A stretch of 64,000 bases of DNA, from the NCBI GenBank assembly GCA_973895155.1, contig OZ316898.1:21540122-21604121 (forward strand), in the 5' to 3' direction. The notes beneath the pieces are model-generated. The model saw nothing but the letters and a program-made list of their open reading frames with translations. It made no database searches and was not told the origin of the DNA. A program made the position numbers and the translations under genes. Source of the stretch: Marsupella aquatica. Taxonomy: Eukaryota > Plantae > Marchantiophyta. The stretch's first letter is position 1, and each line of letters begins with the position of its first letter. Below are positions 11,362 to 54,650 of this stretch, piece by piece.

Positions 11362-12080
11362 GCGTTGGAGGTGGTTCCAACAGTTTCCCAAAATAGCGCT
11401 CTCCAGCTTCAGCATCAGCTTTTGCTGCCAAGGACAGGCATTCCTGTGGTGACAATTTTTCCTTCTTTGAAAGTCGCGCTCCCTCTACGTACACACCAAT
11501 CACAAAGTGTTGAAGAGGAAGAGAAAAACAGGAAAGTCATCCAATAATCACTCAAAGCAAGGAGTCTACAAATTTGGCACGATTCCGGCAGAAATGCTTT
11601 ATCGATTAGCAAAGCAGGAAGACACAGGACACCTGTAATTGCAAAAGTGCTTTCCAAACAAATGCCAGAGCAAGGGCGACAGCTGCTGTCCATGATACCC
11701 TTGATCACTTTTCAGCAAAGAAAACAAAGTAGCAACAGAGGGGTGCTCAAAGGAAAAAACTCAACGAAAAGAGAAACCAGAACAAGAACCAGAAGATACT
11801 GACGAGAAACACATTGCTGTGAAATTCAGTTGGAATTACCATCCGTAGAGTTTCCTTTTTGAAGCCAAATTGCAAACTTAATTGCCATTTCCAATCCGTC
11901 AGGTACCACTGGGAACATGCGACGGATTATGTCTTTGAGCTCCATTTTCGACGACCCTAGCAACATAGGTACTCCGACCCAGCCAAGGCATAGTTTCACA
12001 GCAACGTCTCGCAGTCGTGTTTCGTCATGAATAGTTCTCCAAAGCAGGTTCATAATATTTTCTTCTTCACCACTCGCCAT
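11357..12080 (-). pseudogene. Truncated paralogue of the Crinkler-type gene (exon 1 11840-12080, exon 2 11357-11484; ~122 aa, SAM-like header only)
   Basis: Aligns with 29257-29974 with both splice sites kept. After ...LLEPPPT the sequence switches to LINE DNA and stops (CAC TAG). Confidence 0.85.
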
Positions 12081-13899
12081 TGGATCTTGCAGGCTAAACT
12101 ATACTGCTTACTTCTTAAGATATATGCTAGCATAGACAAGACAGCCACAGACGCAAGTTATAACAAAAGAAAGCACATACAAATGACAAGCAGAAACGAA
12201 ACCCCTCGGGTTGACAGAAATTGTAGCAACAGAGGAAGCGACAGAGGAAAGAGCACACCACAAGGGTGAAAACTACGGTATGAGGCTGTGAAAATCACCA
12301 TCCACCAAACCCTAGATCACCAAAATCCCAGTCCAAATCCTGCAACCGTGCAATGTAAGGCCTTATGATCCGTAGTCTATCATGACAATCAATTAAACAT
12401 GCAACGATTCACCACCTCAAAATTTCCAAACCAGACTGCTCGCAATCCGCCACACACTTCAGTCTATGCAGAACAGACCAGTATACCGAAGGCTCGGACT
12501 CTTATGCCGAGGGCCTCCTCGGTCGGTAGACAAGGAGTTGATCTCGTTCCCGACCAGTTGTGCCTTGTGTAAACCCCCGGGCCTATATTTGAGATCCCCC
12601 AATGTTGATCCGTTGCCGACCTGTTGTGCCTTGTGTAACCCCGGGCCTATATTTGAGAACCCCTAATGTTTATGGTTATGGTCCTACCTTACTCCTTAAC
12701 GAGGTATTGGTACTTGGCCCTCCATTCAGGATCTCCCTTCTCAAGGCAGATCTTGCCCTCCATTTGGGATCGCCCTTCATGATGCAAATCTTGGTCCTTC
12801 ATTCAGGCTGCTCTACCCGCGGCCAATCTGGACCGTCCATTCAGGGTGCTCAATCCGCAGCTAATCTCCGCCCTCCATTTAAAAATGAACGGCCAGATTG
12901 TTAGGGTTTAGGGCGTTCCTGCATCACCATCCAACAGACAGCTGCTATTGGACGGCCCAGATTTTGTTCACCGGGCCGGTGGTTTCCTGGGCGGGCGTTA
13001 CTTAATCTAGGAGAGCAGCAGGATGCGGCCACTTCCCATTTCACTTTCTGGAAACGCTGTCAGGTTGGAAGTTTGTCGTCTGTGCAGGAGCCATTTCCAT
13101 CTCGGCCGGGATGAGCTTTCTCTCGCATTCTAGTCATTCTCCTTCGTGCCTCTCATTCCGTGTTCATCGAGAGCTTGAGTAGATTTGGGTGTTTTGTCTA
13201 GGCTCGAGACGACCGGCTGTGGTGAATGTGGGTGCGGCTGTGAGTTGACTGTTGGAGCACAACTCAACTTTGAGTGGCCTGGTTTTTATTTCTCTTTCCA
13301 TATCAATTGCTTTGGATGTATGCCATCTTTTTGAATGCGTGCCATACTTGTTTTATTATATGCTTATGTCGGTCATTCTAATGAACATTTTCCGCTCTAT
13401 TTGGAATCTTTTAATGTTGATGCTGAACATGACTGCTGAAGGTTTTTCTCTTGTGTTACTCCCGTTCTGACCTATGTTGCCGCTGTGTAGCAATAATATC
13501 TAGTGGAGTAAGGACAAAGTCGCTCAATCATGCCTCCGAAAACATTCCAAGGTGTTTTGACTGTTTTCTTGCATTCGGTTTTGTTCAGTACTCCCTCCGC
13601 ATTGGGGGCCGCTTCAGTTGTAGACTGCTAGGGGTTGCTTGACACTTGTTCATCTCTTCCCTTGTAGGACTCATCTTGAATCATTATAGACCCAAAACGA
13701 GGCTTCGGCTAACTGATCAATGCTTTCCCCATGAATGATGAAGCAGAGATCGCCAGAGAGCTTGCGCCTTTGATGCAAGTGGAGTTTGATAGTTTAAACA
13801 TCAGTGCGAGAGGAGCTTAATAAGGGTTTAATGATTGCCAGCCAGATTCCAGATTCCAGACCAGAATTTGAACTCCCTGAATTACTAGATAATTTATTT

Positions 13900-15482
13900 G
13901 ATTGTGCCACGGATCGTACTCGGAGAGGTGGTGGGACTCTGCTACCTCCGGTATGAGTCAGTCCTCATTAAGAACCCATTGTCCACTACCCCCTCGGCCA
14001 GGAAGCTAGAGGACTGGTATTTAGCTCCCTTGCCCCCAGGAGCCCGCGACTCTACTCAGTTTATCCCCTCGGGTAAGCCCAAAATCATTTTCAGACGTGC
14101 CTCATTGAGACACATCACTCTCCCGTGCGCTCGGGTTTGTTGACGGGCCTCGTCAAAGTTTTGAATGAACTCCGTCATATCCTGCCCGTAGTACCTGCTT
14201 TCGTTCCAAGGGAGAGAGGCGAGGTGCTCAAACCCTTGGGTCTTCAGATAGCATGCATACTTGGGGTGGAGGATGTTCTTGTGAACATTGTCCCCCATGC
14301 GATGCATGGTCAGCTTGGCTACCGCAACCGTGGCCAAAGGCAACCCGGATACGGCTGCGGGTTCCTTCCTCTTCCTACCCCGAGACTGATTCCCGGGTGA
14401 CTAGAAGAAGGGGACATCTCTCCTTCCTCTCGGTCAGGTGGTGGTAGTGCCATTGCCGTGAATATTGGTGTCGGGGCCGTTAGAGTTACCGTGTTATCCC
14501 CTTGGGCTTGCTGGAGTGATGCTGGGTTGTTCGGCGCTTGTTCGGTCATACCCCGCGGCCGTCGATTCAGGGGAGGGTGAGCCTCCTCATCTTTGGAGCT
14601 AATATTCACCGCATTCACCATGGATCATACTCGAAGAGGTGGTGGGACCGGTGGCGGGGACCGGTTCGGCTGAGGCCAAGGAGGTGTAGGTGCGGGTACG
14701 GCTCGGGGGGCTGACTATCAAAAATCTTAGGAACCACGTGCGATCCAAAATAGGTATTTTTGATAGAAATTAACTAAATTTTTAAAAAGCGTAGGAGGCA
14801 AAAGAAGGTATTATAAACTCATGTTTAGAGAATATTCTCTAATATATAATTTTTATAAAATAAAATATGTTATTAATATTGAAAATAGAGAATATTCTTG
14901 GAATTTTTTTTTTATAAAATAGGTCTATTTATATTAGGCTAGGATCGCACGTGGTACCCCAAAATATACACTTAGTTAACCCCCCGAGGGGTACGGGCAT
15001 GGGTTGGCCGGCACTGGTCGTTGATGGTAGAGTTGCCATGAAGTTCTGCAGGTGCCGGTGGAGGTTTTCCAAAGCAAGTGTAGACGGCCTTGTCGACCGG
15101 GTAGTGTTGAACTCGCTGTTGATGATAGCCCGGACCCAAGCGGGGATGTGGTCGAAGTGGTGCCGTTGCAAGTCGATCGTGCCCGGGAGAGTGAAGACCG
15201 CATCCGGGAGCCGAAGCAATGCTTCCCAGAAGCCGATATATTTTCCCCCATTGAAGAAGTACCCTGATACTTCTTCGGGTCGGTAAAGCTCGCTCTGGGA
15301 CGGGTAATCAATGTTAAGGAGATAGTGGTGTCGGCCTGCTAAGCGAATGGCTCTCTCGTATTCGTGTTTGATTTCCTATCGGCGTGGGTTGGCGTGTTTT
15401 AATGAGTCGGCCAAGTGCCCTCCGATAGACAGGAACTGTGTCCAGAATTGTATGGCCGAACTGGAAAGGATCACATGCGACG
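13900..15482 (-). pseudogene. Decayed plant transposon-associated protein (PMD/Athila-ORF1-like domain at C-terminus), copy 1
   Basis: Broken reading frame ending ...LKTQGFEHLASLPW...DMTEFIQNFD...TRAHGRVMCLNEARLKMILGLPEG...DNGF, with stops, a frameshift and a MITE insertion. Family call is by motif resemblance only. Confidence 0.5.
14702..14988. mobile_element. 287-bp MITE with 8-bp TSD GGGTACGG
   Basis: TIRs CTCGGGGGGCTGACTA / TAGTTAACCCCCCGAG; inner inverted pair ACCACGTGCGATCC / GGATCGCACGTGGT; AT-rich core; TSD at 14694-14701 and 14989-14996. The paralogue at ~32582-32589 is the empty site. Confidence 0.95.
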
Positions 15483-15557
15483 TTCAGAGGAGATAGCAGG
15501 TGACTAAGGATAAGCAAGAGAGCTGGAGTCGAAGCTGGCGTGTGGACTGAAGAACTG

Positions 15558-16908
15558 GGAATTTGAAGGTGACAAGCACATTAAGGAACCAGATTGAAGG
15601 CTGGTACAGGAATTCTAGAAGCATTGACCAAGCTTTGTTTCCTTTGTATTTCTCACGAACCTAATTGAACGGTGACACTTTTGATGCTAACGGAGTCCAA
15701 TGGTTTCAACATGAATGTTATAGCTGCAAAAGACTTTAATTGGAAATGTTATGGGAGTGCGGGATTACAAGTGAGTCACCATGAATGCTAGTGGTGTATG
15801 AATACTTAAAACATAATGTTATGGGAGCCTACGGTAACCACCCGTAAGTCACCCTAATCTATACTAGCGGAGTTTAAAGGTTTTAATAACAACGTTGTGG
15901 GAGTCCAAATGTTGAAACGTCGAGACCGTGCACCCCATGTAGGAGACCATGCACCGCGCTCCCTAAATACCCTGAAATGGCCTGAAGACCGGACTCATTG
16001 CACGCGGTGTGCAAAGAAGATATGTAGAGGTAAACCCCGAACCATAAACGGGAGTTGGCATTTGGAGGATGGCAGGATTGCAGTTGATCCCTTGGTGTAT
16101 TGGGGGCCGTGGGAGGGAGCCACGAGGAACAACGCAAGGGTAAGGGAACCCTATAATAAACCCTAAATGACGGGGAGGGAGGGTGGGCAGAGTTGATGCG
16201 AGGGGAGTATGGAAAGAAGGCCGCAGTGCTATCCGGGCTCCCGAAGCAGTGAGTTTTGAAGAATGGCGCGGGGATCGACTTGCTTCGTAATGTTGATTCC
16301 TTTGTATTTTCATGGCGGGACGGTCTTTTTCGGGCACTTGTGGCAAAAAGACCACGAAAAAGACCGCAAAGACCGGGCATTGCGATCATTGGGCTGCACG
16401 AAAATGTATATAGGGTTGCACATGCCCCCTAGTACTCGCACCCTCTAAATGGGGGGTCACCCTCACCCTCAACCCCCATGGAATCGCTCCCCCATCCTCA
16501 CCCCCAGCTCGTTACACCCCCAAATGCTAGAGTAGGGTTCCACACGCCCCTTGGTACTCGCACCCTCAAAACTGGGGGGCACCTTCACCCTCAACCCCCA
16601 TAGAACCGCTCCCCCACCCTCACCCCCAGCTCATTACACCCCCAAAAGCTATAGTAGGGTTGCACACGCCCCCTAGTACTCGCATCCTCAAAACTGGGGG
16701 GGCACCCTCAACCCCCATGGAACCCCTCCCCCACCCTCACCCCCAGCTCGTTACACCCCCAAAAGCTACAGTAGGGTGGCACTCGCCCCCTAGTACGCGC
16801 ACCCCAAAAATTGGGGGGTACCCCCACCCCTAACCCCTCCAAAATGTGCACACAACAAACTGGGGGTGAAACTCACCCCCAATATTCCCAAATCTCACTA
16901 GTACTTAA
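15558..16908. repeat. Terminal part of the composite repeat, including ~3.5 diverged units of the 121-bp satellite (C-rich strand, ~16410-16830); inverted copy at ~52125-52850
   Basis: 15558-16030 is the reverse complement of ~52381-52850. 16700-16887 is the reverse complement of ~52145-52330 and ~50363-50545. Confidence 0.9.
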
Positions 16909-18159
16909 TGTCAGATGCCTAAAAAACATAATTACATAGGAATTATGTAAATATGGGTAAATGTTTTTGTTTTGTGTATAGTTTATATCAATTAGTTATT
17001 TAGTGTACAAAACTAATATCAATAAATGTATTGATTCTAGAAAAATATTGACTAGGAAAGATAAGTTATAGTTGAAGGTCAATAGAAAAAAAATAAGTAT
17101 TATCTAAGTAGTTGTGGTAGGTGTCAACTAATGAGTGATCAAATAAAGCAATAGGAAATGCCTAAAATTGCTACATGGTCACAACGAAAAAAATATCTTT
17201 GAGAAAAAATCTCAATATAAGTCAAAAATAAAATAAAATAAAAAGACAAGATTCTATAACTTGCAAGAAAAGTTATAAAAAAGCAATAGGGAATGCCCAA
17301 AATTGCTACATGGTCACAACAAAAATAGTGGAGAAAGAATCTCAACAAAGATGATACTTCTAATCCAAGTAGTACTAAGCCAAGGAAAAAGACAATGAGA
17401 TATTTCAATGGACGGATTAGAAGTCAATTAGCTAGTGTGAAGACGATTCTTAGCCTAGTGGAAAAGTGTGGACAAAAAGGAAAAAGAATACTCATCAAGA
17501 AACAAGGAGTAGAATCATTTGAAAAAAAGATAGATATGGTTATAGAAGGGCTCAAGTTCAAGTATAGATAAATAGCATCATGAGTAGTAGATCACAAGCT
17601 TAAGGCAAAGCATTGTGAGAAATCTACAAAGAGTATAGACCTTAGTGAGCAAATTAGAAGTACTAGGAGGGAGATGGTGATCATCAAGGTGCATCAAGCT
17701 AGGAGCTTTAGGCATAGATTCTAGAAATGCCGGTCTATGATCCTATTATATTTGTGCGCACCAAATATCTTGTTTGGAGAAAGTTAGGACATGGCAATGA
17801 TATAGGGAAGTGGTTTACACAATTCCTTGGGGATACTAAGGGAATTTCCAACTCAAGGCTATTGCGATGGGTCTATATTGCACTTTACATTCGACAACAT
17901 CAAGTAGTCTTGAATTCACAAGAGAAGGCAGAACTGAATAGCAAGGTGCAAGATGCTATTGGAGGATGGTTACAAGATTGCATTAGAAGGACAAGACCAA
18001 GAGACAATGACGCAATCACTGACTGACCCTCGCTATCTAGTGTACCTAGATCAGGTCAAACATCGGGCCAAGTTTTCTCTGTGGAATCAAGTAGGTCGTC
18101 CAACCCAGGATCCGGACCTGTGGTTTTAACACTTATTTTGGTACTTGTGAGGCAAGTAG

Positions 18160-21100
18160 TGTGATACAGTACATTAGTTGGATCTTGAACGACAACGGAA
18201 GTCTTTACCTTTCATCGGTATCACACTCAAGACATGGATGAAATTCAAGAAGCTATGCAAGAGAATACCTACACAAGTGTTCAGCAACCGGACCAGACAG
18301 CACTACTCCAACAAGATTAGTTCTCCCACGACAATAGTTAAGATCAGTCAATCTCCACCATTTTAGTTAAATAGTTAAAGTAGTTAGAAAAGTCTCATAC
18401 TTTTCCAGGAGATAGCCCTTATGTAGCAGACCATACCCTGAAAGTATCGACCAAAACCGACATATAGTTTAGATGTTAGAGCATTTTTAGTTTTGCAGTA
18501 GCGTGAGTGCGCAACGGCGCTAGTGCTCCAAAGCGCAAAGGCGCAACGGCGCTTCCAACACTTAGAAAATTTTCCGGAACAATATATTTTTTATCCGACA
18601 GCACTTTTCATTGATTTTATTAAGGCACTTAGACACCTCAAAAAAGTCTAAACTTTTGCTAGCATGTAGCATGTATATAAATCTTCCACCTAGGAAAGTT
18701 TCACCCCATTTTGACTTTTATGTTAGAAATTAAAATTCTGATAAACTCACTATTTATTAGTTTTATCACAAAAGTGCAAAAAACACTTTTACTCCAGTTG
18801 TGACGCCAATGACATGGTCCTTATTTTGTAATCTGATTAAGTAGGTTGCTGTATGCAAGGAGTAGCTATTGATATTGCATAACAATTAGCAAGATGGCAA
18901 GAATAAGGGTAATCATGGCGTTAAAAGTAGGGAAATAAAAGCTATGTCGCGGGTGGTCGACGATCATATCTCTTTCAATATGTCACCAAATCCGGATCTG
19001 TAAAGAGCATTGGAAAGATCTGGTCAGGGCGAGTAAAATCGATATAAAACACTTGAGAAACGGAGGTGTATTAAGAAAGATACGGCCTGATTAGTGTGAC
19101 GGGTTAACTTGTGGCCGGAATTAGCGGATTCGGCTTCAGTTTCGGGTTAACCCAAGCTCGACCACGGCTTAGCTTATGTGAGCACGGCTTCAGCTTAGCT
19201 CAGGTCAGCACGGCTTCAGCTTAGCTTAGGTAAGCACGGCTTCAGCTTAGCTCAGGTAAGAACGGCTTCAGCTTAGCTCAGGTCAGCACGGCTTCAGCTT
19301 AGCTCAGGTCAACACGGCTTCAGCTTAGCTCAGGTCAGCGCGGCCTCAGGTTAGCATAGGTAAGCTCGGATTCGGGCTCAGCTTAGGCTAGGTTAGCGGA
19401 TAGCGGATAGTGGGTAGCGGCCTAACCCGAGACCACGGGTTAGCTCTACTCGGGTTAGATAGGATAGCTAGGTTAGCCAAACTCGGGTTAGCTATGTAAC
19501 TCGGGTTAGCGCAGCAGTGAGTACCCCCTCTCGGTTGCGGGGGCATAACTCTCTGTGTATTTGACCAAATCGGCTATAATTGACCTCGTTGGAAAGAGGA
19601 GCTCAAGCCGCTTCCAACGCTGCTATCCACGCAGAAAATGGTTAAATAGAGAAATCGGGAGAGGAGGCGCAAGCTCGCAAAAACCATGGAGGAGGGCCGA
19701 ATCCGAAGTACATAGCCAATTCGAGATAGAAATAAAGTTGCGAGTTAGGGTTCAGTAGTTAGAGATAGTGGCGGCTCTGTTAGGGCTGGGATGGGGCTCC
19801 AGCAGCGTAGTATCCACCCATTTGGGCTCAGTATGAGAGTATATAGAGCAGCCCCCGGTAGAGGCAAGGGGGGGGACTTCAGTTGTGTGATCTCACTTAG
19901 ACTGAGCAGCGGGGAGGAGCTCTGTGCAAGCAAGGCTGGACTTGGACGCTGCGTGTTGGGGAGAGCTTGGTTGTGCTATTACTCAGGGAGTAATCAGCCA
20001 AGCTTCACAGCAACGGGTTGCTAGGTTTGCGAGCTGGATTGTGGCTCTTTCTAGTGGGCAGCACAACTGGGTTCTTTTCCCCCGATACAGAGCCTTGGTG
20101 ATAGGTGATGTATTGGTGATTGTAAACTATGGGGAGGATTTCAATTCGATTTGCGGTGGGCACATTAGGGAGGCTGAGGTACTGATTAAGGGGCAGCAGG
20201 AGGAGCATTTACAGTTCAATCTGGCAAGGCTACGTGATCCATGGGGAGTCCCGGCCTTTGTCTGGTGGAGAGCACTAAGGGATCTATGGCCAGAGCTAAG
20301 CTTGCAGGGCAAGCGTGAGGCCGGGCCTCATTGCAGTCTGGGGTAGATCGCCGTTAGGCCTGGTACCAGCTTTGAAGTCGAGTCAACTATGCATGCGTAA
20401 CTTGACGTTCTGAATTGGAGGTGTGAGATCTGTATGTGCCCCCAAGAATGAAGTGCAGTGAAGGAGGTTGAGTTTAGGATTGAGTTTGCAAGGCAAGTAC
20501 GGGATTGGTTCGAGTCCAATCTGCCGTTGCAATCTGGAGTGAGCCGGGCTCAGGTTCAGGATTGAGCTTGCATGGCAAGCACGGGGCTTGCAGGGCAAGC
20601 ACGTCACAATCTGGAGGAGACAGCCTTCGGCCCTAGTGTTCGGATCAAGTGTTCTCAGTGAACTATTGTGCACATCTTTGAATCTAATTGAGTTTTCCTC
20701 TCAGGCCTCATTTCTCTCATGGATGTGTGTGTGAGGCAATCTGAGTGTATGATGGAACTAGCAGCGCCACTGAGAGGTGTACCGGGTGCATTGAAGCGGG
20801 CTGGGTGAGGACTGTCATAGCTCTGATTGTTGAGAGTGGAATGGCAGAGTGGTGGGGCAATGGCTTAGAAGTCCCTAAGCCGGGAATCAGTCAGGAGTCA
20901 CTGGTTTATGGGTACATTCCGGTGGCGGAATAGAAACATACCTATGACAGTAAGCATATGTATAGACCTATGCGCACCGTAGCGCTAGGCCCTGTGTGTA
21001 CGGGCCCGATATGAAGACCCCTTCTCACCAGAACTATCATGAGCGCAGATCTGATCCCCAACCTTGGTTCCTTGGGATTGAGCTTGGGTGATGTGTGATA

Positions 21101-22248
21101 GAGTCTTGCTATGATAGTCTGGTGTTAAGGGCATAAACTGGTGTTTACCGGCATTCACAACATCCCTTCGTGATCCTCAGGTACAAGGAGATGGTTTTGG
21201 CACCCATAGTGACGTTTTTGGTGTTAAAACCCATGTCAATCGCGTGACACCAGTTTACACTAGGGATAACTTTTGGTTAGTTTTTCATTCCAGCAACATT
21301 CTAGTGAACCTTGAGTACTCTTATAGCATATTTTCATACTTTTTACTTTAGTTTATGACCCATAAGATATGAAAGGGCATGTCCTTTCATTATCTCTTTC
21401 CCTTAGTTCCTGCCACCCTATATGTAGTTGAATTTTTGCCACTTTTTGTGTGAAAAAATTTCATGAGCGCTCAGTTGCAAGATTGCAACTTTGTTACCTC
21501 CATTTGTAGTAAGCACTCCATTGTATATGAGTACTTAATACAAAGGAATTCTTCCCCCTTCAAGTCTAAATGAATGAGAAGTTTGGACCCTTGAAGTAAA
21601 ATTATTGTGATTGTTAAATCTTTTGAGTATGTGGAAATAGATTCCTTGTTGGTGATGTTTCACATATTCCTTAGTTCTTGATGCATAGTTTTTGGCGTGA
21701 TATTGCTTGTGCATGGGATGCAAAGATTGTTACTTACCAATTACTTATGGCTTCAAATTTGATCATGATGGTGTCTCTTATTTGTGACACAAAGTACCGA
21801 TTGGATACAGAAGTGATTGATTACTAGTCTCCACTCAGTACCTTGGAAAGAAAAGTTGAGACATGTTGACGGCATTTTAGTAATCATCCTAGTACCGTAA
21901 TCCTTTCCAGAAATGTTCTTCCGGATATACCACCTAAATCATACCAAATGAAGTTATGTTGAGGAATCACCTTGGTTGTTTCCTAACTCCCTCACCATAC
22001 CTCAAGATTTTCATTGTGTTTTATTAATTGTTTCCATTTTGTTAATTTTATTTTTAATGTCAAGCAGACATTTAAAACTATGCCTTGCTGAGCAACCATA
22101 GTAAAAGGCTCAACCTTTGTGTTTTTGTTACCTTATTCATTCATAAGTGCTAAATCATAGAAAATCATTCCTTACATGTTTTTCCATGGGAACGAATACC
22201 GAGTTTTGGATCTTAAATGTTTATTTATGTCCCTAGTGTGATACTACA
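18160..22248 (+). mobile_element. Nested 4089-bp solo LTR, Athila-like family
   Basis: TGTGATAC...TACTACA with TSD AGTAG (18155-18159, 22249-22253). Its last ~0.9 kb shares ordered motifs (GATATGAA..GGCATGTC, GACATGTTG.CGGCATTTTA, GGGAACGAATACCGAGTTT, ACTACA) with the LTR ending at 49478. Confidence 0.88.
19165..19395. repeat. 26-bp tandem repeat (AGCACGGCTTCAGCTTAGCTCAGGTC), ~7 copies, decaying into CGGGTTAG motifs to ~19510
   Basis: Direct inspection; units start at 19181, 19207, 19233 and onward. Confidence 0.92.
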
Positions 22249-23658
22249 AGTAGATGGGGTAACTTGGAATCTGCATGTTGTGTAGAGATCAAACGAGACA
22301 ATGAAGCTTTGTCGGCTCATACTCGTAGTATTCTTTGTAAATACCTTTTAGATCAGTATGCTACTTACTTGGTGAAAAACCAAAAGTAGAAAACCTTATA
22401 AATAGTAGTTGTAGAATAAATAATCAAGATTCTTTGTACAAATCTTGAGATATGTAGCTCTAGGTATTTAGCCTAGGGTTGTTAAGAATGATTCTTGACC
22501 TTAGATGTACTATGGCAATTGAGTGGCTTTGATTGGATTTGAGTGGAGGCCATAGGATACCAACCATATAAATAAGAGGGAGTGGAGGCTCACTTCCTCA
22601 CTTGCTCATTAGTTGCTCACTTGCTTGCTTTCTTGGAGGGGCGCCACGGGTTGGGACTCAAGAGAGAAGGAGTGAGGACTAGTGAGGAGGTAGAGTGTGT
22701 GGCACCTTGGAAGTTAGGAGTTAGTGTTCATGAAAGACTCTAGTATTGAAGACCTTGGGTGGAGTCCAAGCTTGTACTAAGTTTACTTGATATAAACCTA
22801 TGTGCCTTACTTCCTTGGACACTCTTATTCTTACTTGTGAAAGGAGTGTGATACTTTCTTTTGGTGGTTTTATAACATGTTTTTGACGGTTTTCTTTTGA
22901 TTTTTTTGGTGACATCTTTTATAATCTTGAAGTACTTTGGTGATAGAGTTTGATTACCAAACAATGTTGGAGTACATCACCAAGATTTCTTGGACAAGAA
23001 ATGATGTGATTGTATGCTCGGTGGTTGTTTGGCCAAGCACTAGCACACCAAGTGGAAACTTTATCTTTGTTTGAGATTTTGAAGCCAAACTTTGGTGATC
23101 GAGTTTTGGTTGATCAAGAAGGCACTGGGGTGTAGTATGGGCAAGGATTCTTATGGCGAGTGTTGACATGACTATATTGGCGAGAGGCAATTGATCGATC
23201 ACTAGCGAATCAAAGTGGCGCTTCCATTTTTTTGTGGTTAGACAATTAGAAGTTGTGTAGGCTGACTTGTTGGATGGTAGCCTGACATGACAACCCACGG
23301 TGGTAACAGCCCGTGGTGGTTCTGACATTGGTTGGTGCAGGGTGACCAGTTATAGAGGCTAGAAGTCCCCTTGATGGATTTCTCTTCTGGCGACAGAAGT
23401 AAAATCATCTAGTGCAAGTTTGGATTTGATACAAGATTACTAATGTGGCGGCAGCCAATAACGGTCTTGTAGTTGTTTAGAATACTAAAATCTGCAGTAT
23501 GTGTGTGAGGATTTAGTTTTCCTAAAGATAGATGTATTGTGAGTACTAATTTCCAAGATTGCATCCCTCTTGAGAACCCAAAATGATAAGGGACTGTGTT
23601 TTGAGAGTGAAATGAATTAAGTATGTGTTAAGTCCCAAAGCAGAGGTCTGACACTTAA

Positions 23659-23694
23659 AAAACTAGGGATGACACCCTAAACCCTAAACTTAAA
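23659..23694. repeat. Composite-repeat terminus with (CCCTAAA)2
   Basis: AAAACTAGGGATGACA-CCCTAAA-CCCTAAA-CTTAAA is the reverse complement of the termini at 50277-50320 and 52052-52102. Confidence 0.85.
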
Positions 23695-27865: not shown

Positions 27866-29974
27866 CTACAGCTTTGTGCCAAACACGCGACATCGTTCGC
27901 AACGTTTCTTGCAGATATCCTCAAGCATCTTCGCTGCTGCTGTACGCTCCTGCTGCATTTGTTTTGCCCGGGATCTCATCAATTGACGTTCTTCCGTACC
28001 GCCTGTAGAAAAGTCATCGAGCCATTCAGCTATAAGTTTCCCGAGTTGGTACATGTCCGATCCCTTGGTGTATCTTTTCCTTTTGTCATTGTCTTCTTCC
28101 AACGTTTCCGCATCCCAACCCGTTAAGTCCTCACCAACCCATACTTCATTGTCGGGTCCAGCAGCTTCCAAGTCTATGATCACCCATTTCCATTCACCCA
28201 AATCATTTACTTTGATAACGTTGGGCCACCTTATGTCCCTGTGGGTGTAGCCTTTCATGTGCAAGTCCGCAAGGCCGCATAACATGTCATGCGTGGCATT
28301 TACTAAATCCTTGCAATCCTTAGGCTTTGCATATGGGTCACCAACAGGTTGTAGTCGCAATACTGTTCTAGCCTTGGATCGTCGGACGGATATAAGTTGG
28401 ATCAGGTACCTGGAGCCAGCGATTTTTTCATACAGGCATTCTATCGCGGTCACCTTCTCTTTCGTCAATCCTGGGATTTCCTTCGTCACGCAGTCAGGAT
28501 AGATCGTCACTGCTCCACCATAAACTCTTGCTATTGGCTTATATAATGCCAAGGGGATGTCACTATCCAGTTCTTCCTGTAGTTTCTGTAGGAGACAGTG
28601 CATCCGAATGGTGCTATGTAGGAACTTGGCTACATCGCTCAACATATTCAAGTCATAGAGTTGTGAGATACTTTCACAAAGAATTTCCTTGCCTCGCGGA
28701 TAGAGCTTCAGCCATCGAAACTGCCTTCCACCGGAGCAACCACCAATCACATAAGGGAGCTTACCATAGAACAAAGGGCTCCATGCCTTTAATTTTGAGG
28801 TGTTCTCACCTGCAGCCTCGTGCCGAAGTGCCGGGTCTGTCTTATTCTCCCATCGGAGAATGAGACAATCCCTCACAAACAGCTGAAAATCTGGTCTTAA
28901 TAGCGGTTTTAGTGGTCGCGATGCTACAGTACTAGTCGGGGGATTGGGTGAATCCAGTAACCAGTCCAAACCTTTTAATTTTCCGTTTGCTGGAGCCTCC
29001 TCATTTAATAATGAGATGAACTCTCCAGTGAGAGTAGCCAATTCATGTGAGCTGGTGGCCTCATTGCCTGGACAACGACGCATTATATGTCCGAACACAA
29101 TGTCGCAGAAGGATGCCAAGTCTGTCGCCGCTGCGGGAATATCAAGCTCCACCAGCTCAGAAGAGCGTATTTTCTTGAAAATTACAGGATTGCGAATTGG
29201 GAGCGGTACTGGTGTCTGGGACAAAAACTCCGAGAGTTCAAGGGCACTTCGTGGGAGCGTCGGAGGTGGTTCCAACAGTTTCCCAAAATAGCGCTCTCCA
29301 GCTTCAGCATCAGCTTTTGCTGCCAAGGACAGGCATTCCTGTGGTGACGGTTTTGCCTTCTTTGAAAGTCGCGCTCCCTCTGCGTACACACCAATCACGA
29401 AGTGTTGAAGAGGAAGAGAAAAACAGGAAAGTCATCCAATAATCACTCGAGCAAGGAGTCTACAAATTTGGCACGATTCCGGCAGAAATGCTTTATCGGT
29501 TAGCAAAGCAGGAAGACACAGGACACCTGTAATTGCAAAAGTGCTTTCCAAACAAATGCCAGAGCAAGGGCGACAGCTGCTGTCCATGATACCCTTGATC
29601 ACTTTTCAGCAAAGAAAACAAAGCAGCAACAGAGGGGTGCTCAAAGGAAAAAACTCAACGAAAAGAGAAACCAGAACAAGAACCAGAAGATACTGACGAG
29701 AAACACATTGCTGTGAAATTCAGTTGGAATTACCATCCGTAGAGTTTCCTTTTTGAAGCCGAATTGCCAACTTAATTGCCACTATCAATCCGCCAGGTGC
29801 CACTGGGAACAGGCGCCGGATTATGTCTTCGAGCTCCATTTCCGACAACTCTAGCAACATAGGTACTCCGACCCAGTCAAGGCATAGTTTCGCAGCAACG
29901 CCTCGCAGTCGTGCTTCGTCATGAATAGTTCTCCGAAGCAGGTTCATAATATTTTCTTCTTCACCACTCGCCAT
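27866..29974 (-). CDS. Crinkler (CRN)-type effector-like protein: SAM-like header + PD-(D/E)xK REase + protein kinase; exons 29974-29734 and 29379-27866, 584 aa
   Basis: Phase-1 intron (G|GTAATT ... pyrimidine tract...TACGCAG|AG) joins the 80-aa exon (VAAKLCLDWVGVPMLLELSEMELEDII...GLIVAIKLAI, SAM-like) in frame to the long ORF. REase motif LRPDFQLF...LRWENK; kinase motifs LHMKGYTHRDIRWPNV, WVIIDLEAAG, SDMYQLGKLI. No internal stops. Confidence 0.85.
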
Positions 29975-44706: not shown

Positions 44707-44721
44707 ACCAAGGTCAACCGA

Positions 44722-44749
44722 CCCTAAACCCTAAACCCTAAACCCTAAA
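44722..44749. repeat. Interstitial telomeric repeat (CCCTAAA)4
   Basis: Four perfect units. Confidence 0.95.
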
Positions 44750-45409
44750 TCGAGAGAAGAACACATGGAAGGGAGATATTTTTGTAAGAATGGAGGGCTG
44801 GTATGAACAGAAGCACCAGCCAGACTTCCTTCAAATAAGCCACGATCCCTTCAAACAAGTTCAGTTCTCTAAGTCCTAGCTTAGTTCTCTCCTTGCTCCA
44901 AACTGAATCAGGCAAACCGAGTTTACACCAGTAACTAAGCCTTGAGATAAGGTTGACCCTAGTTTAAAGTGACAATATCGATGGGTTCTGCTGAAACCTG
45001 AATAAATCGCTTAGTTTAGACTCAATCGGAGTACTTTTAAATGCATTGGAAAGCTATCGACGGTGGCTAGAGGCTGGCACAAGCTAGGAGGATTGGGAGT
45101 TCACTAAGATTCTCTTGGAAGTCAGGTTGTATAACAGTTTGATATTGCCAGCTACTTGAGAGGTTTCGATTGTGGTAAGGCTCTAAAAGGAGGTCAAGTG
45201 GGACTACAATCAAAGTGCATGGCTGATCCAAGAGTTCCTGATCCAAGAGGGCTACCTGATCATCACTTTCCTCCCCTGGTCCACAAGGCTAAGTTCACCT
45301 TGTGGAGTAAGCATGGGAGAGCTGTAAGTAGTGAGTAATTCCAGAAGTATGAAGAAATTGAAATTTTTAAATTTTTTTACGTTGTTTAAACTACACTTAC
45401 TGTTAATAT

Positions 45410-45848: not shown

Positions 45849-48251
45849 ATGGCGAACCTCGGTATTGATGAACAGTACCGAGTTGACACTCTGGCAATTC
45901 CTAAGAGCATAGTCGCCCGAATTCCACAAGCGCCCGATAGCTATGCAAATTTACGGACTTCCTTACAACAGCTAGGTTTGGAGCATCTACTTGCCGTCCC
46001 TTGGAAAGTAGAGCTCGACACATATTTGCAGGATTTTGTAAAGGGATCAATGCTTGCTCCTGAATGTCAACAAACTATTAGAGCTCGACCCAGCTTATGG
46101 ACTGTAGAACAAATTGCTTATGCCTTCCGCTGCCCTTCAGAAGGAGAAGGATTATATTCAAAGAAGAAAGATTTGTCTACACCCTACTTCTCTGGGATTC
46201 GCAATCTCACCAATGGCTGGAATTTGACACAGTGTACTTCTCCAGATTTGAGAGTGCTTCTGGAATTTCTAGTACCCATTTTACACCCGAAGAAGCCAAC
46301 CATCTGTCCAGTGGCTTTGGTGAATACAATTGTAGCCGCACACAGTGGAGCCGTCCAGGTTAATTGGGCCCTGTTAATTTTCAATGTGATGAAGGATCAG
46401 GTGAGAACCATGAAGGCAGGTAGACCCACTCATCTGCAGGTTTATTTGTCTCAACTCTATCATGCTTATGAATGTTTATATCCAGAGGAGAGAACGGAGA
46501 GAGGGCTGCTCTTGATTGAGTTAGGCATTGAAGAAGGCCTGAGTATGGAAGAACCAGTGGATGCTATTCCCCTGGATTCTCATGATCAGAATGTGGATGC
46601 TGAGATGGAATTTGAAGATACACCTGCTCATAACTTAGAGCTGGTTCGACACCCCCTGGCTAACATGGTGTATTCACCAAGAGTTTATACAAGAGAATCT
46701 GGAGCTGGCGAAGACAGAGATTTCCCTGAGCAACCAGCCGACGTTGCTGAACTCGTTCTTGCAACTATCAATCTAAGGACCAACTCATCCACACCTCCAA
46801 AGGCAGAAGCGAATCAACAACTCGTCGATAAGTTGACATCTCTTCTTAGTTGCAGTGATGATGGTCTTTTCGATGCTGTCAATGATTTAAGAATGGAAGC
46901 TGTCAGTTTGAAGTCACCATTCCCTGATCAGTTAAGCCCTATCAGGATGACCTCTCCTCCAGGAGAGACAACACCAGTGGAATATGTGACTCTCACCCCT
47001 GTTACCCAACAGACCTCCTTTCAAGCAGGTGGTGACCTTGTTCCAGTAACAGACAATATTAGCTGTGCAGCTATTGTGGATGATCTACTGGAGATACTAC
47101 AGTGTAACCCTCGGCAGATAGTCACTGTAGTTAGCAACCTGGTGCAGCGATGTCCCACTGCTACCCCTTCTCCTAGTCGAAGTTTTCCCCCTTACAGCCC
47201 TGACTCTAACTATGAACCCACCGAAGGACCGTCCTATCATCAGACACAGTATGAGCATCCTTATGTTCGAAGGGATCTTCCCGAAGACTCTGATCCGCCC
47301 TCAGATGATGACTCTATTAGGTCTTATGAAAATTCTCTTTGGTCATCCCCAAGGCAAGGATTTGAGAATATTGATGTAGCTCTAAAATCAAATCCAAATC
47401 TAGTAGCAGTGATCACCTCGTCTACCCAAACCCCCAGGAATGCTACTATCGCAAGCAGGTACCCTAGACGTCCTGAGTCAGAAGTACACAGGTATGTCAC
47501 CACTTGCAAAGTAATGCAGGCCAACAGACCACCGGTTGGAGAGTTCTGGAGATACTACTATCTAAAGAAGACTGAGGCAAGCTACATTTTTGATCTTAGG
47601 TGTCTTGGAACTTCTAGAGTGGAAATGGCACAATTTGATGAGTTCTGGACTGACTCAATTTACTTTCGGCCTATTCTTGCTATGATGCTACTCCAAGGTG
47701 ATGTAGAGGTAGAGGATCCAGACCTAGTTCTGGCATACTTTGGAAACTTTGCCGCCTATGCCCTAGATTTTGTGATTTCCTTCCTGATGCAGAGCAAGAA
47801 GTCTACTGCTCCACAGCACGATTACATACCACGAGAACCCAAGGTTACCCTTGTTTCAACCAGTACATTGGCTGAGAAACAGAGGATCTGGAATAATGTC
47901 ACTTCTCAGACTCTAGCTGAATTCAATCGATATTTCAGAGATGTCAGGTGGAGACTTCGCCCCTTCTATTCCAGGATGCTGAATAGTGATGAGTTCCTGT
48001 TTCATTATTCCCAAGTGTACGCTGCTACTTGCAACAACTATGATGTGCTCGGGATCTACAGAGAAGCTCTTCGTATAGATTCATGTTATTTAATGAAAAG
48101 GATGCCCTTGATGTATCCTGAGAGACAACTGAGGTGCCTACCTTACTCAAGAGGATCCCCACGCCAAGCTGAACTGATAGAGGTTACTCAGAACCGAATT
48201 GTTACCCTTGTGGAGTTGCTGGAACCCGACGACATCCGACAGCAAGCTTGA
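45849..48251 (+). CDS. Intact 800-aa retrotransposon accessory protein; N-terminal domain resembles plant-mobile-domain/Athila-ORF1-like proteins, Pro/Ser/acidic middle, unknown C-terminal domain
   Basis: Uninterrupted 2.4-kb ORF from ATG; N-terminal motifs LGLEHLLAVPW, TIRARP..W, NGW...C, LEFLVPILHPKKP, VNWA, YLSQLY; no gag, protease, RT or integrase motifs. Confidence 0.75.
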   Translation: MANLGIDEQYRVDTLAIPKSIVARIPQAPDSYANLRTSLQQLGLEHLLAVPWKVELDTYLQDFVKGSMLAPECQQTIRARPSLWTVEQIAYAFRCPSEGEGLYSKKKDLSTPYFSGIRNLTNGWNLTQCTSPDLRVLLEFLVPILHPKKPTICPVALVNTIVAAHSGAVQVNWALLIFNVMKDQVRTMKAGRPTHLQVYLSQLYHAYECLYPEERTERGLLLIELGIEEGLSMEEPVDAIPLDSHDQNVDAEMEFEDTPAHNLELVRHPLANMVYSPRVYTRESGAGEDRDFPEQPADVAELVLATINLRTNSSTPPKAEANQQLVDKLTSLLSCSDDGLFDAVNDLRMEAVSLKSPFPDQLSPIRMTSPPGETTPVEYVTLTPVTQQTSFQAGGDLVPVTDNISCAAIVDDLLEILQCNPRQIVTVVSNLVQRCPTATPSPSRSFPPYSPDSNYEPTEGPSYHQTQYEHPYVRRDLPEDSDPPSDDDSIRSYENSLWSSPRQGFENIDVALKSNPNLVAVITSSTQTPRNATIASRYPRRPESEVHRYVTTCKVMQANRPPVGEFWRYYYLKKTEASYIFDLRCLGTSRVEMAQFDEFWTDSIYFRPILAMMLLQGDVEVEDPDLVLAYFGNFAAYALDFVISFLMQSKKSTAPQHDYIPREPKVTLVSTSTLAEKQRIWNNVTSQTLAEFNRYFRDVRWRLRPFYSRMLNSDEFLFHYSQVYAATCNNYDVLGIYREALRIDSCYLMKRMPLMYPERQLRCLPYSRGSPRQAELIEVTQNRIVTLVELLEPDDIRQQA

Positions 48252-49488: not shown

Positions 49489-49506
49489 TGGCGCCGCTGC
49501 CGGGGA
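49489..49506 (+). other. Primer-binding site TGGCGCCGCTGCCGGGGA (tRNA-Asp type, typical of Athila-lineage elements)
   Basis: One mismatch to the canonical TGGCGCCGTTGCCGGGGA; lies 10 nt after the LTR end. Confidence 0.85.
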
Positions 49507-49796: not shown

Positions 49797-50288
49797 ATGG
49801 TGAGGAAAAGCAGACCTCAGAAAAGAGAAAGAGCCTTGATTAGGTCAAGGGATAATCAAACACACATGATTATCAGTGCCACTGCAAGAGAGAGAACAAC
49901 TATTTTGAGAAGGCAGGTGTCCAACATCAGAGGAGGAAGCTACTTTTGGGGTGGCGAATTGGTGAAGGTTGACTCCTGGGACACCAATATTTTGTATGAT
50001 TGTGTATTTGTTTTCAGAAGAGCCCTAGATGGAAGACTGGAATTGATTGAAGCCACTCAAGATGAGGAATTTGATGCCAATTTTATTCCCCCCTTACTAA
50101 AAGAACATGACATTAAGGAGGAAGTATTGGAGGAGGAACTTGAACATCAATTAAGGGAAACGTTGGATAAGTTAAAAGGGAATCCATTGTGGAGAAACCA
50201 ACTTGATTATGTTTTAACAGAGTTTTACCAGAATAATCCCAATTTAATACTTAGGGAGGAAAGACCAGTTATGACCTTTAGGGTTTAG
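49797..50288 (+). pseudogene. First internal ORF of the Athila-like element, cut off at 50276 by telomeric repeats
   Basis: Open from ATG 49797 to the junction; its last codons (FRV*) are encoded by TTTAGGGTTTAG. Identity (gag N-terminus or extra ORF) is not recognisable. Confidence 0.55.
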
Positions 50289-50304
50289 GGTTTAGGGTTT
50301 AGAG
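50277..50304. repeat. (TTTAGGG)3 TTTAGAG at composite-repeat terminus
   Basis: Directly followed by TGTCATCCCCAGTTTT. Confidence 0.95.
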
Positions 50305-50477
50305 TGTCATCCCCAGTTTTCACATGTGGCATACCAGTTTTTTAAGTACTGGTATGATTATTGAATATTGGGGGTGAGTTTGACCCCCAGTTTGTTGTGT
50401 GCGCATTTTGGAGGGGCTAGGGGTGGGGGTACCCCGCAATTTTCGGGGTGCGTGTACCAGGGGGCGAGTGCCACCCT

Positions 50478-51800
50478 ACTGTAGCTTTTGGGGGTGTAAC
50501 GAGCTGGGGGTGAGGGTGGGGGAGGGGTTCCATGGGGGTTGAGGGTGAGGGTGGCCCCCAGTTTTGGGGGTGCGTGCACATGGGGGCGTGTGCAACCCTA
50601 ATTGAGCATTGGGGGTGTAACGAGCTGGGGGTGAGGGTGGGGGAGGGGTTCCATGGGGGTTGAGGGTGAGGGTGGCCCCCAGTTTTGGGGGTGCGTGCAC
50701 ATGGGGGCGTGTGCAACCCTAATTGAGCATTGGGGGTGTAACGAGCTGGGGGTGAGGGTGGGGGAGGGGTTCCATGGGGGTTGAGGGTGAGGATGGCCCC
50801 CAGTTTTGGGGGTGCGTGCACATGGGGGCCTGTGCAACCCTACTGTAGCATTGGGGGTGTAACGAGCTGGGGGGGAGGGTGGGGGAGGGGTTCCATGGGG
50901 GTTGAGGGTGAGGGTGGCCCCCAGTTTTGGGGGTGCGTGCACATGGGGGCGTGTGCAACCCTAATTGAGCATTGGGGGTGTAACGAGCTGGGGGTGAGGG
51001 TGGGGGAGGGGTTCCATGGGGGTTGAGGGTGAGGGTGGCCCCCAATTTTGGGGGTGCGTGCACATGGGGGCGTGTGCAACCCTAATTGAGCATTGGGGGT
51101 GTAACGAGCTGGGGGTGAGGGTGGGGGAGGGGTTCCATGGGGGTTGAGGGTGAGGATGGCCCCCAGTTTTGGGGGTGCGTGCACATGGGGGCGTGTGCAA
51201 CCCTAATTGAGCATTGGGGGTGTAACGAGCTGGGGGTGAGGGTGGGGGAGGGGTTCCATGGGGGTTGAGGGTGAGGATGGCCCCCAGTTTTGGGGGTGCG
51301 TGCACATGGGGGCCTGTGCAACCCTACTGTAGCATTGGGGGTGTAACGAGCTGGGGGTGAGGGTGGGGGAGGGGTTCCATGGGGGTTGAGGGTGAGGGTG
51401 GCCCCCAGTTTTGGGGGTGCGTGCACATGGGGGCGTGTGCAACCCTAATTGAGCATTGGGGGTGTAACGAGCTGGGGGTGAGGGTGGGGGAGGGGTTCCA
51501 TGGGGGTTGAGGGTGAGGGTGGCCCCCAATTTTGGGGGTGCGTGCACATGGGGGCGTGTGCAACCCTAATTGAGCATTGGGGGTGTAACGAGCTGGGGGT
51601 GAGGGTGGGGGAGGGGTTCCATGGGGGTTGAGGGTGAGGATGGCCCCCAGTTTTGGGGGTGCGTGCACATGGGGGCCTGTGCAACCCTACTGTAGCATTG
51701 GGGGTGTAACGAGCTGGGGGTGAGGGTGGGGGAGGGGTTCCATGGGGGTTGAGGGTGAGGGTGGCCCCCAGTTTTGGGGGTGCGTGCACATGGGGGTGAG
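50478..51800. repeat. 121-bp G-rich satellite, ~11 near-identical copies
   Basis: Exact 121-bp period (ORF-track starts 50579, 50700 ... 51789); each unit has about ten G3-G5 runs on the + strand. Confidence 0.97.
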
Positions 51801-52051
51801 GGTGGTCAAAATTGGGGGTGAATCACCCCCAATGTATGCATACTAGGAGTGAGTCCACGCTCCTATCGCGACGAGGTGATCACAACTAGGGGTACGAGTA
51901 GTTGGCTTTTTATGTAATTTTGACTTTTTTAAAGTATTGGTAAAACGTTTCATTTTGGTGGATTTGCGCAAATAGCACGTTTTGGAACGTTACGTGCTCG
52001 CCTAGCACGTTTTTTTGACAAGTTTAGCAAAAAGAAAAAAAAGGGTTAGCG

Positions 52052-54650
52052 TTTAGGGTTTAGGGTTTATGGTTTAGGGTTTAGAGTGTCATCCCCAGTT
52101 TTCACATGTGGCATACCAGTTTTTTAAGTACTGGTATGATTATTGAATATTGGGGGTGAGTTTGACCCCCAGTTTGTTGTGTGCGCATTTTGGAGGGGCT
52201 AGGGGTGGGGGTACCCCGCAATTTTCGGGGTGCGTGTACCAGGGGGCGAGTGCCACCCTACTGTAGCTTTTGGGGGTGTAACGAGCTGGGGGTGAGGGTG
52301 GGGGAGGGGTTCCATGGGGGTTGAGGGTGAGGGTGGCCCCCAGTTTTGGGGGTGCGTGCACATGGGGGCGTGTGCAACCCTGTATATATCTTCTCTGCAC
52401 AGCGCGTGCAATGAGGCCGGTCTTCAGGCCATTTCAGGGTATTTAGGGACCGCGGTGCATGGTCTCCTACATGCAGTGCACGGTCTCAACATTTCATTAT
52501 TTGGACTCCCACAACATTATTATCAAAACCTTTAAACTCCACTAGTATTGATTAGGGTGACTTACGGGTGGTTGCCGTAGGCTCCCATAACATTATTTTT
52601 TAAGTGTTCATACACCACTAGCATTCATTGTGACTCACTTGTAGTCCCGCACTCCCATAACATTTCCAATAAATGTCTTTTGCAGCTATAACATTCATGT
52701 TGAAACCATTGGACTCCGTTAGCATCAAAAGTGTCACCATTCAATTTGGGTTCGTGAGAAATACAAAGGAAACAAAGCTTGGTCAATGCTTCTAGAATTC
52801 TTGTACCAGCCTTCAATCTGGTTCCTTAATGTGCTCGTCACCTTCAAATTCCCTTCTGCATTATTGTTGGGTCGGTATTTTGGTCGGGAAGCATTGGCCT
52901 TCGAGAATTCCTGTCGCTGGCCTTCAATCTGGTCCTGACTGTGCTCGCCACCTCCAAATTCCCTTCAATCTGCATCTTGAATCTTGCATCGCTTGGATGG
53001 CGTACTGACATCGTCAATAATTGCAGCAAGTGATGGATTAGAGTCATTCACTGTCGGATGCAGTCTTCGAGCGAAGGCATTTCCGAATGGTTGCATTTTT
53101 TATGCTTACTGGTGGCAGTGGCGTGGCATGGTTTCAGGCTGAGTGTGCAGTGATGGAGCTTCTCTTCTGTACAACATCCATGGTTGCGGTATCCATGCCT
53201 TGCTACTCACCTCCATCTGTGTTGCAACTCCATTCAGACACTCCTAGGACCCAAATCGCCTTCACTGTCCAACCCACCATACAACACTCTTATGTAAAGG
53301 CTGTGTCTCACATGCGATACATGGTATGTCTCCAAGTTTCAGCATATGGACTCCCACAACATTTCCGGTTAAAGTGGAGGCTCCCATAACATTTCCGGTT
53401 AAACCGTAGACTCCCATAGCTTTCATGTTGAAACCTTTAAACTCCGTTAGCATCAAATGTGTCACCATTCAATTTTGGACGTGGGAAATGAGATACAAAA
53501 TTTTGGACGTGGGAAATGCCCATGTGCTCAGATGGGTATGTATGTTTCAAATTACAGTATTTTGAAGGTTGGGGGTTACGAGGGATGGGGTATTCCAAAA
53601 CGCACAGCCACCATGTGTTGGGGTAATGCAAGTGCCAATGTGCTCCGAAGGGTATGTATGTATCAAATTACAGTATTTTGAAGGTTGGGGGTATGAGGGA
53701 TGGGGTATTCTAAAATGCACAGCCACCATGGGCTGGGGTAATGCAAATTAATGCCCATGTGCTCTGAAGGGTATTAATAGGATAATGTCCTGGTTAGAGG
53801 GCATTGTGGGATATAATGCCCGTAACTAGGACATTTAATGTACGTAAAAACTTGAGTGACTTTTTGGTAACAAACAAGAAAAAGTGAATCCCTGAAATAG
53901 AAAATTCAAATTAAAGGGTCATCCAAGAAGTGGTTGCTATGGAATTGGCCAAAAATATACCTTCTTTAGTTATATTAGATTCTATTCATAGATATTGTGT
54001 TAGTATCAGGTAGGTGTTTTGTATAATCCCCTCCTCAAAAAAAGGGGTGCATTATGGAGAATTAATGCACTCAAATATACAAAGAGAAAAGCCACGAAAG
54101 TCTTTACGTATCAAAATTACAGTATTGAAGGTGAAGGGGGGTACGTGGGATGGGGGTATTCTATAACGCACAGCCACAGTTGAAGCCACTTTGATAAGTG
54201 ATTACTCAGTTGAACAATAGGAGAGCAATGCTGCTCTAAGTGGAATGTCTTATTTTGTTTACGAGTGGAATGTCTTGTTTTGTGGACTACCGTAAACAGA
54301 CATGTTCATTAATGAAGAAATGCGGTGCTGGTCAGACTGTCCTCACTGTTGTTTTTATAAAGTGGGATGAGAAGCTATTGACAAACCACATCATCACTGA
54401 CCACACACACTCTTACTGTATAATAATCAGAAGTACTCACTGTACTGTCCAGTAGTCTGCGTTTTTGGATTAGTTGTGATGATTTCTGTTCAGTCTGCTA
54501 CTATAAGGAGGTTGAATGGGCAACCTTCCAGTATGGGTGAAGGTTTTTTCGGGAACAAACAGGCACAGCAGGGTAGTATGGTTGAATTGCCTAATCTATC
54601 TTGTTGTGGGCATTGTATTGCACCTCGCGCTAACCCTTGGTACACTCTTA
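52052..54650. repeat. Inverted copy of the composite repeat, starting with a second telomere-repeat terminus (52052-52086); 52059-52380 duplicates 50277-50598
   Basis: Contains in order the terminus, one satellite unit, reverse complements of 15558-16030 and 33585-33860, the 1-478 block, and the reverse complement of 4035-5370. Confidence 0.92.

Follow-up and report, generated by a model that had tools for sequence, protein, structure and literature searches.

Short interstitial telomeric sequences, built in plants from the telomere unit TTTAGGG, insert at sites of double-strand-break repair. Short internal telomere tracts also mark the proximal edge of the Y' elements of yeast and of human subtelomeric blocks, which are copied by recombination or break-induced replication and carry satellites and a variable gene family. 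Among Penelope-like elements (PLEs), a non-autonomous copy need not carry a reverse transcriptase (RT). Canonical hammerhead ribozymes have been reported in all PLEs that lack the endonuclease (EN-minus PLEs) (PMC8557442), and the hammerhead fold of Athena elements and Terminons sits directly before the telomeric repeats (PMC6431247, PMC8557442). Here, we describe a 64,000-nt stretch of contig OZ316898.1 of the liverwort Marsupella aquatica, referred to below as the window, in which three copies of a repeat block end at the same base next to a short CCCTAAA tract. An earlier note on this DNA had proposed a mobile unit that joins telomerase-made ends in an Athena- or Terminon-like manner and spreads a Crinkler (CRN) gene. 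Our own, tentative explanation is a local mosaic of segmental duplications in which a tract-marked edge was reused by DNA-level repair or copying.

The block resembles Athena, Terminon, and Coprina elements in that reverse-complement telomeric repeats follow directly after a folded 3' terminus and the element lies distal to its tract. Likewise, short tracts divide the head-to-tail copies, host genes are located within copies or between them, and target-site duplications (TSDs) are lacking. However, the block has a different stem-loop in place of a hammerhead, the window holds no PLE RT, the copies face both ways in an interior-looking locus, and simple 5' truncation does not account for one copy. 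With the subtelomeric duplicons of yeast and humans, the locus shares satellites and a repeated block whose proximal edge lies at a short, telomere-oriented tract, but here the blocks between successive tracts are not homologous over their full length and the tracts measure only 14 to 40 bp. Tracts of two to six units at many unrelated sites, one of them in an insert between direct repeats, recall the interstitial sequences left by break repair, which alone leave unexplained why one family ends three times at the same base. Plant Helitrons also capture gene fragments, lack terminal inverted repeats (TIRs) and TSDs, and have a hairpin near the 3' end. Nevertheless, membership in this group was rejected: no Rep/Hel was found in the window, the three ends are not CTRR followed by T, and an AT-rich hairpin 3 nt from the tract does not fit the hairpin-CTRR spacing.

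Copies of the block and their telomeric edges

The analysis covered this one window. Copies were compared by self-BLAST, tandem repeats were called by Tandem Repeats Finder (TRF), and telomeric tracts were counted as CCCTAAA-type 14-mers, of which 16 were observed against 0.04 expected. The structural pattern is genuine rather than random, and its orientation carries information.

Three ends, those of copies 1, D, and C, stop at the same base (...GGGATGACA) and continue into two, four, and approximately six telomeric units, respectively. Past the tracts, the three flanks are mutually unrelated, and neither TSDs nor TIRs were seen at these tract-bearing ends. Inspection thus agrees with the earlier note on the shared terminal sequence, the differing flanks, and the lack of TIRs and TSDs. 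The range of units is wider than the two to four described, however, and the ends do not record three independent events. Copies C and D are 99.7% identical across exactly their shared 323 bp, so that the three ends represent two old lineages rather than three. C and D also have the variant first unit CTCTAAA in common. Satellite units within D diverge from one another by 3 to 7%, and the near-identity of C and D against this diverged array fits the pattern that a recent conversion or duplication would leave. As D holds 11.4 satellite units versus 2.1 in C, D is not a truncated C. The end of copy 1 aligns to those of C and D once a 6.7-kb insertion is taken out, save for a deletion between two AAAAC repeats that leaves its terminus 21 nt short, with one hairpin arm gone.

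The last ~70 nt of the block form a stem-loop that ends 3 nt short of the tract (minimum free energy, -30.3 kcal/mol; z, -3.67). Its z score is -2.95 when the tract is left out. No fold was found upstream of the other tracts in the window (z, -1.5 to +1.6).

The G-rich strand of a telomere runs 5' to 3' toward the chromosome end. Given this polarity and the order of unit, CCCTAAA, and flank, the flank is proximal and the unit lies on the chromosome-end side. A unit on the distal side of its tract excludes an ordinary subtelomere with its own telomere. This orientation fits any model that joins a TTTAGGG-tipped DNA end to the unit or extends such an end from it. The tract sides of copy 1 and of C/D face each other over 26.6 kb, and these opposed orientations exclude a single terminal array.

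Self-BLAST confirmed one modular family with at least five copies in both orientations, including copies at positions 1 to 6663, and the module order given in the earlier note for the direct copies holds in the self-BLAST and TRF layout: gene 5' end, ORF (open reading frame) remnants, ~110-bp modules, 121-bp satellite, terminus, and tract. The body of copy 1 (11362-16908, + strand; self-BLAST, TRF, and ORFs) starts with a 5' fragment of the CRN-like gene on the - strand, comprising an exon 2 stub from 11362 and exon 1 within 11826-12080. It continues with 64- and 38-bp tandem repeats (12537-12879; TRF), a short telomeric tract (12900-12914), ORF remnants (14056-14621, -), the modules (15557-16030), and the satellite (16400-16908; TRF). 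The terminus (...AAAACTAGGGATGACA) and its two CCCTAAA units (23672-23690) occupy 23651-23690 (+). Copy 2 (29257-34087, +) is co-linear with copy 1 at 95 to 98% identity by self-BLAST; 11362-14707 corresponds to 29257-32596 at 95.8% identity, and 14989-15558 corresponds to 32582-33151. Copy 2 lacks the satellite, the terminus, and a terminal tract and stops at 34088 at an end reading CACTAGTAG... (CACTAG...).

Copies D and C lie on the - strand. Copy D (50276-51796; delimited by TRF and end comparison) consists of a four-unit tract (50276-50305), the terminus with its stem-loop (50306-50420), and 11.4 units of the 121-bp satellite (50421-51796). In copy C (52046-54652; self-BLAST), whose terminal sequence spans 52046-52207, a tract of about six units, some degenerate (52046-52087), is followed by the terminus, 2.1 satellite units (52124-52381), the modules (52379-53120), and, farther upstream, segments shared with window positions 1-476 and 4031-5271. 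Reverse matches link 15557-16030 to 52853-52379 and 33585-34087 to 53120-52610. Copy C has only ~1.2 kb of the 3' part (modules, satellite, and terminus) in common with copies 1 and 2, and upstream beyond the satellite, copies 1, C, and D each carry different sequence. Between D and C lies a 249-bp spacer (51797-52045, -), which joins the D satellite without an intervening tract and is related to the other copies only through a 27-nt GGGGGT..CACCCCC motif at 51809-51833. This palindromic motif recurs at 50345-50370, and the two occurrences stand on both sides of the D satellite array in the same orientation. Further partial module copies in both orientations are found at 1-6663, together with a 119-bp satellite (5032-5404) and a duplicated cyclin gene fragment. 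All block copies thus lie inside ~55 kb, and many other homology breakpoints carry no tract.

At least seven further short tracts were detected, at 12900, 30785, 44720, 54725, 59275, 59663, and 62916. Five of these are unrelated to the unit, and the window is rich in short tracts in unrelated contexts. No two-unit tract was present in 43 kb around the homologous kinase gene at two other bryophyte-like loci (L001 and L002), so that this window is unusually tract rich. The possibility that the other tracts are the ends of sister families was rejected, since nothing upstream of them is shared and no fold is present. Two of the seven, at 12900 and 30785, are internal to the unit. Each adjoins a GGCCCA site-II-like motif, ~800 bp upstream of kinase exon 1, and looks like a promoter telo-box in a typical plant promoter arrangement; at 30785-30860 and 12900-12975, the two-unit motif also adjoins the 38- and 64/65-bp tandem repeats.

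The tract at 54725-54743 (-), ~70 bp upstream of copy C and in the same orientation, belongs to a 34-nt insert composed of two telomeric units plus 20 nt. Imperfect direct repeats of ~23 to 26 nt, ending in TCAGAATACT, stand on each side of this insert (positions 54700-54790), and its first 17 nt match the tract starts of C and D exactly. The arrangement looks like a repair or insertion footprint. A four-unit tract at 44720-44751 (+) forms an inverted pair with the D tract (50276-50305) around 5.5 kb that hold an 800-aa ORF. These are the two longest perfect tracts, and they are oriented as the two ends of a linear chromosome would be. Elsewhere, identical AAACCCTAAACCCTAAACTTT motifs at 59275-59295 and 59663-59684 lie 388 bp apart in the same orientation, with unrelated surroundings and no fold.

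Origin of the tract-marked edges

We favor, with some reserve, the local mosaic of duplications. The duplicated block is satellite bearing and probably transposon derived. A broken or eroded DNA end with a few telomerase-added TTTAGGG units would pair with the CCCTAAA tract at the block edge and would then be extended by copying the block as DNA, through break-induced or template-switch repair. Alternatively, the end and the block could have been plainly joined and later homogenized by gene conversion. The CRN-like kinase gene would be a neighbor swept into one duplication, one copy of which was subsequently cut by a long interspersed nuclear element (LINE). Such reuse of an edge at the DNA level would fix the junction base, let the unit number and the flanks vary, and leave neither a TSD nor a TIR, while DNA-level copying would yield long co-linear copies that retain promoter, intron, and satellite. 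This explanation is preferred because the copies are mosaic and, as seen here, confined to one locus, because neither a ribozyme nor an RT belonging to the block was found, and because the window shows general duplication activity. A ~185-bp piece of a cyclin exon, for example, was duplicated together with module repeats (3790-3973 and 6478-6663) where there is no tract, indicating that gene pieces are copied here regardless of tracts.

Several observations weigh against a purely DNA-level origin. The significantly stable stem-loop 3 nt before the tract has no use in such a model. The same-orientation tracts at 54743, 52087, and 50305 resemble a head-to-tail array, dividing successive blocks. 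The outer edge of a tract of just 14 to 40 bp is the exact end point of at least two independent events. Tracts of this length are short for homology-driven copying, and such end points would be explained more naturally by a molecule with a defined end. Finally, confinement to this locus rests on one window and amounts to absence of evidence. A terminal 30-mer and a satellite 27-mer, each scanned as an exact pattern against JGI metagenome contigs, and a protein word search with the satellite/terminus ORF (52140-52400) all returned 0 matches from collections that apparently do not include the species. None of ten window ORFs was present in an exact look-up in a 15-billion-protein collection. 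The blanks most likely reflect the absence of the species from the collections searched.

A molecule with a defined end could be the RNA of a non-autonomous retroelement, which we consider possible although rather unlikely. Its 3' stem-loop and CCCUAAA repeats would anneal to a G-rich 3' overhang, either a telomere or a telomerase-seeded break, and prime an RT supplied in trans by an endonuclease-free PLE or by an L1 without endonuclease activity, leaving 5'-truncated head-to-tail copies. This would account for the common terminal base followed by C-strand repeats before differing flanks, the lack of TSDs and TIRs, the unit distal to its tract, the stable 3' fold just upstream of the repeats, and the three same-orientation tracts that divide consecutive blocks. 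The CTCTAAA first unit of C and D would be expected if the element templated the tract. To this extent, the Athena/Terminon-like mode previously proposed agrees with the locus. However, an Rfam search of the whole window gave no match of any kind at the gathering score, and no hammerhead was detected at an E value of ≤10 over 50000-53200. When all six frames were scanned with Pfam (113 segments of ≥85 aa without stop codons), no PLE RT, GIY-YIG, Helitron Rep/Hel, transposase, or integrase was detected, but only L1-type RVT_1 and zf-RVT. The checks for a Penelope-type RT, a hammerhead, and Rep/Hel that had been suggested therefore found none of these in the window, although the statement that it holds no mobilizing enzyme fails, since an L1-type RT is present (~7340-11361, -). 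The opposed tract sides also argue against one terminal array, D, with 11 satellite units versus 2 in C and a private 249-bp spacer that meets the satellite with no tract between them, departs from a simple 5' truncation, one arm of the fold is missing from copy 1, and the gene is found in only two of at least five copies. No copy was seen outside the window, a weak test in collections apparently without the species. The retroelement is kept under consideration because the ends coincide exactly, the 3' terminus folds, and the order of the copies resembles an array. Its specific form, a bryophyte element without a hammerhead whose 3' stem-loop and CCCUAAA would prime on telomerase-made G-strand ends, build Terminon-like arrays, and drag host genes along, is doubtful to the same degree.

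Other explanations appear much less probable. A stem-loop directly followed by a short repeat tail could also mark a "stringent" retroposon, which a partner LINE would recognize and insert through target-primed reverse transcription, with TSDs hidden because no 5' end is visible. Although LINEs exist in this genome and D resembles a 5'-truncated copy, the only LINE in the window has no telomeric match at its 3' end, the other tracts share no upstream sequence or fold, and no TSD was seen around D or the spacer plus D, which makes this origin improbable. Reading the opposite strand, the terminus could be the start (TGTCA...) of a long terminal repeat (LTR)-like or other repeat. The TTTAGGG tract, with a purine- or A-rich run upstream of it, would then be either a target that the repeat favors or, in a 3' LTR, the polypurine-tract side, and an LTR retrotransposon would have its internal region in the flank with the 800-aa ORF. 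The opposite strand does begin with TG, and at several sites the tract follows an A-rich or purine-rich run. In addition, the 800-aa ORF, whose family occurs downstream of a Ty3/gypsy-type pol at another locus (L004), is located on the same strand as D, 2 kb upstream. We nonetheless give this reading little credence, as the window contains no second LTR, gag, pol, or integrase, the sequences past the satellite differ between C and D, and the three flanks are mutually unrelated. It is similarly hard to believe that the tracts are simply promoter telo-boxes bound by TRB proteins, with the coincidence of tract and repeat edge inherited from one ancestor. Telo-boxes are established in plant promoters (PMC11287191), the duplicated tract at 30785 and 12900 has the promoter-like setting described above, and pyrimidine-rich sequence follows five of the eight tracts. 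However, four to six units are long for a telo-box, and it would be left unexplained why homology ends exactly at the tract in copies that are independent and have unrelated flanks.

The kinase gene, insertions, and neighboring sequences

The CRN-like kinase gene (27866-29974, -) was delimited by domain and homology searches in which its two exons were queried separately. Exon 1 (29974-29734) is SAM-like by eye and has no Pfam match. The intron runs from a GT donor at 29733 to an AG acceptor at 29380 and is followed in frame by exon 2 (29379-27866), which encodes a kinase of the Pkinase_fungal/Pkinase type according to Pfam. The best relatives of the ORF at 27866-29398 (-) were from the liverwort Calypogeia fissa (58%) and the moss Ceratodon purpureus, while relatives from Chlamydomonas and Phytophthora reached only 25 to 28% identity. 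Together with the TTTAGGG telomere unit, these relatives assign the window to a bryophyte-like land plant and not to an oomycete. A CRN of Phytophthora fragariae matched at 28% identity (E value, 1e-14 by tblastn) over the pre-kinase and kinase part only. The Crinkler N-terminal domain (PF20147) is present in the Phytophthora protein P0011; it was not detected in exon 1, in exon 2, or in the bryophyte relatives P0001, P0003, and P0008. Judged by these relatives, the gene belongs to the host plant and encodes a predicted CRN-type kinase module, distant from the oomycete CRN, and the label of Crinkler nuclease-kinase does not hold. No evidence for a role as an injected effector was found in the sequence searches.

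The gene is present in a single co-linear 5-kb duplication pair (copies 1 and 2) and hence in only two of the at least five copies, and the copy 1 fragment is broken at 11362, where exon 2 abuts the LINE. The kinase loci of C. fissa (L001) and of an ENA contig (L002) have only coding DNA in common with the window. The gene therefore looks like a passenger or neighbor swept into one duplication and not like element cargo. The spreading of an effector gene by the unit, put forward earlier, is not borne out by this distribution.

The L1-type LINE (~7340-11361, -), identified by Pfam and PDB matches, is frameshifted and 5' truncated in its endonuclease domain (RVT_1, 3e-31; L1 ORF2 structures in PDB, 3e-40; zf-RVT). 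It keeps an intact-looking RT ORF of 609 aa, while the frames are shifted elsewhere. Its 5' end meets the broken kinase exon 2 of copy 1 head-on at 11362, and self-BLAST did not locate the remainder of the exon on the other side of the LINE. The junction points to a target deletion or rearrangement. There is no telomeric match at the 3' end of the LINE. The flank of copy 1 was considered as the missing 5' part of this element and rejected, as no endonuclease-like ORF is found there. A 50-nt similarity between the same flank and the sequence past copy 2 scores only level with the top one of 200 shuffled sequences.

Copy 1 is interrupted by a later insertion of 6.7 kb (16909-23650), which has a 7-bp TIR (TGTCAGA/TCTGACA) and a 5-bp TSD (CTTAA) and contains neither LTRs nor a recognizable protein. 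A 26-bp repeat in eight units lies within it at 19167-19373. At 34088, where copy 2 stops, the earlier note had a CACTA element cutting the copy. The CACTA-like end is there, but it is the only CACTAGTAGAAACC end, and neither a second end nor a transposase domain was found in the window; the candidate may be truncated.

The ORF remnants of the unit (14056-14621 and 31988-32509, both -) had been described as a decayed transposon-protein ORF, but they have no Pfam match even at an E value of ≤1. They share only an 18-residue motif with the retrotransposon-associated family of the 800-aa ORF (pairwise E values, 4e-5 and 3e-4; 4 to 6% probability over 18 residues in profile comparison). The 800-aa ORF itself (45849-48251, +) has one close relative (72%) in Logan, and ~75 to 82% DNA identity to the Logan contig reaches into noncoding flanks with TTTACGAGTT-type repeats. 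A HMMER search of 1.84 billion representatives yielded 291 relatives with two conserved parts, and no Pfam domain was present in the ten relatives scanned. Three relative loci were considered (L003, L004, and L005). In L004, a JGI contig, the relative lies directly downstream of the Ty3/gypsy-type pol, which suggests from gene order that the family is probably an accessory ORF of LTR retrotransposons. The possibility that copy D is the LTR of an element comprising the 800-aa region was rejected, given that the window contains no second LTR and no pol.

The duplicated cyclin piece derives from a C-terminal-domain exon in the ORF at 6498-7046 (-). A degenerate 18-bp minisatellite of ~23 units (GATAAGAGTACCCTCATT) occupies 56433-56922 and shows higher-order periods of 37, 55, and 130 bp.

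Significance for telomere-associated repeats in land plants

If the block did attach to telomerase-made ends, land plants would join rotifers and fungi, the groups from which this mode of spread is mainly known. A simpler 3' structure would then suffice, without the ribozyme thought to be universal, and the process would offer a route for host gene duplication. If the locus is only a local mosaic, it would be a clean plant example of short internal telomere tracts marking the edges of duplications, but would amount to ordinary genome decay.

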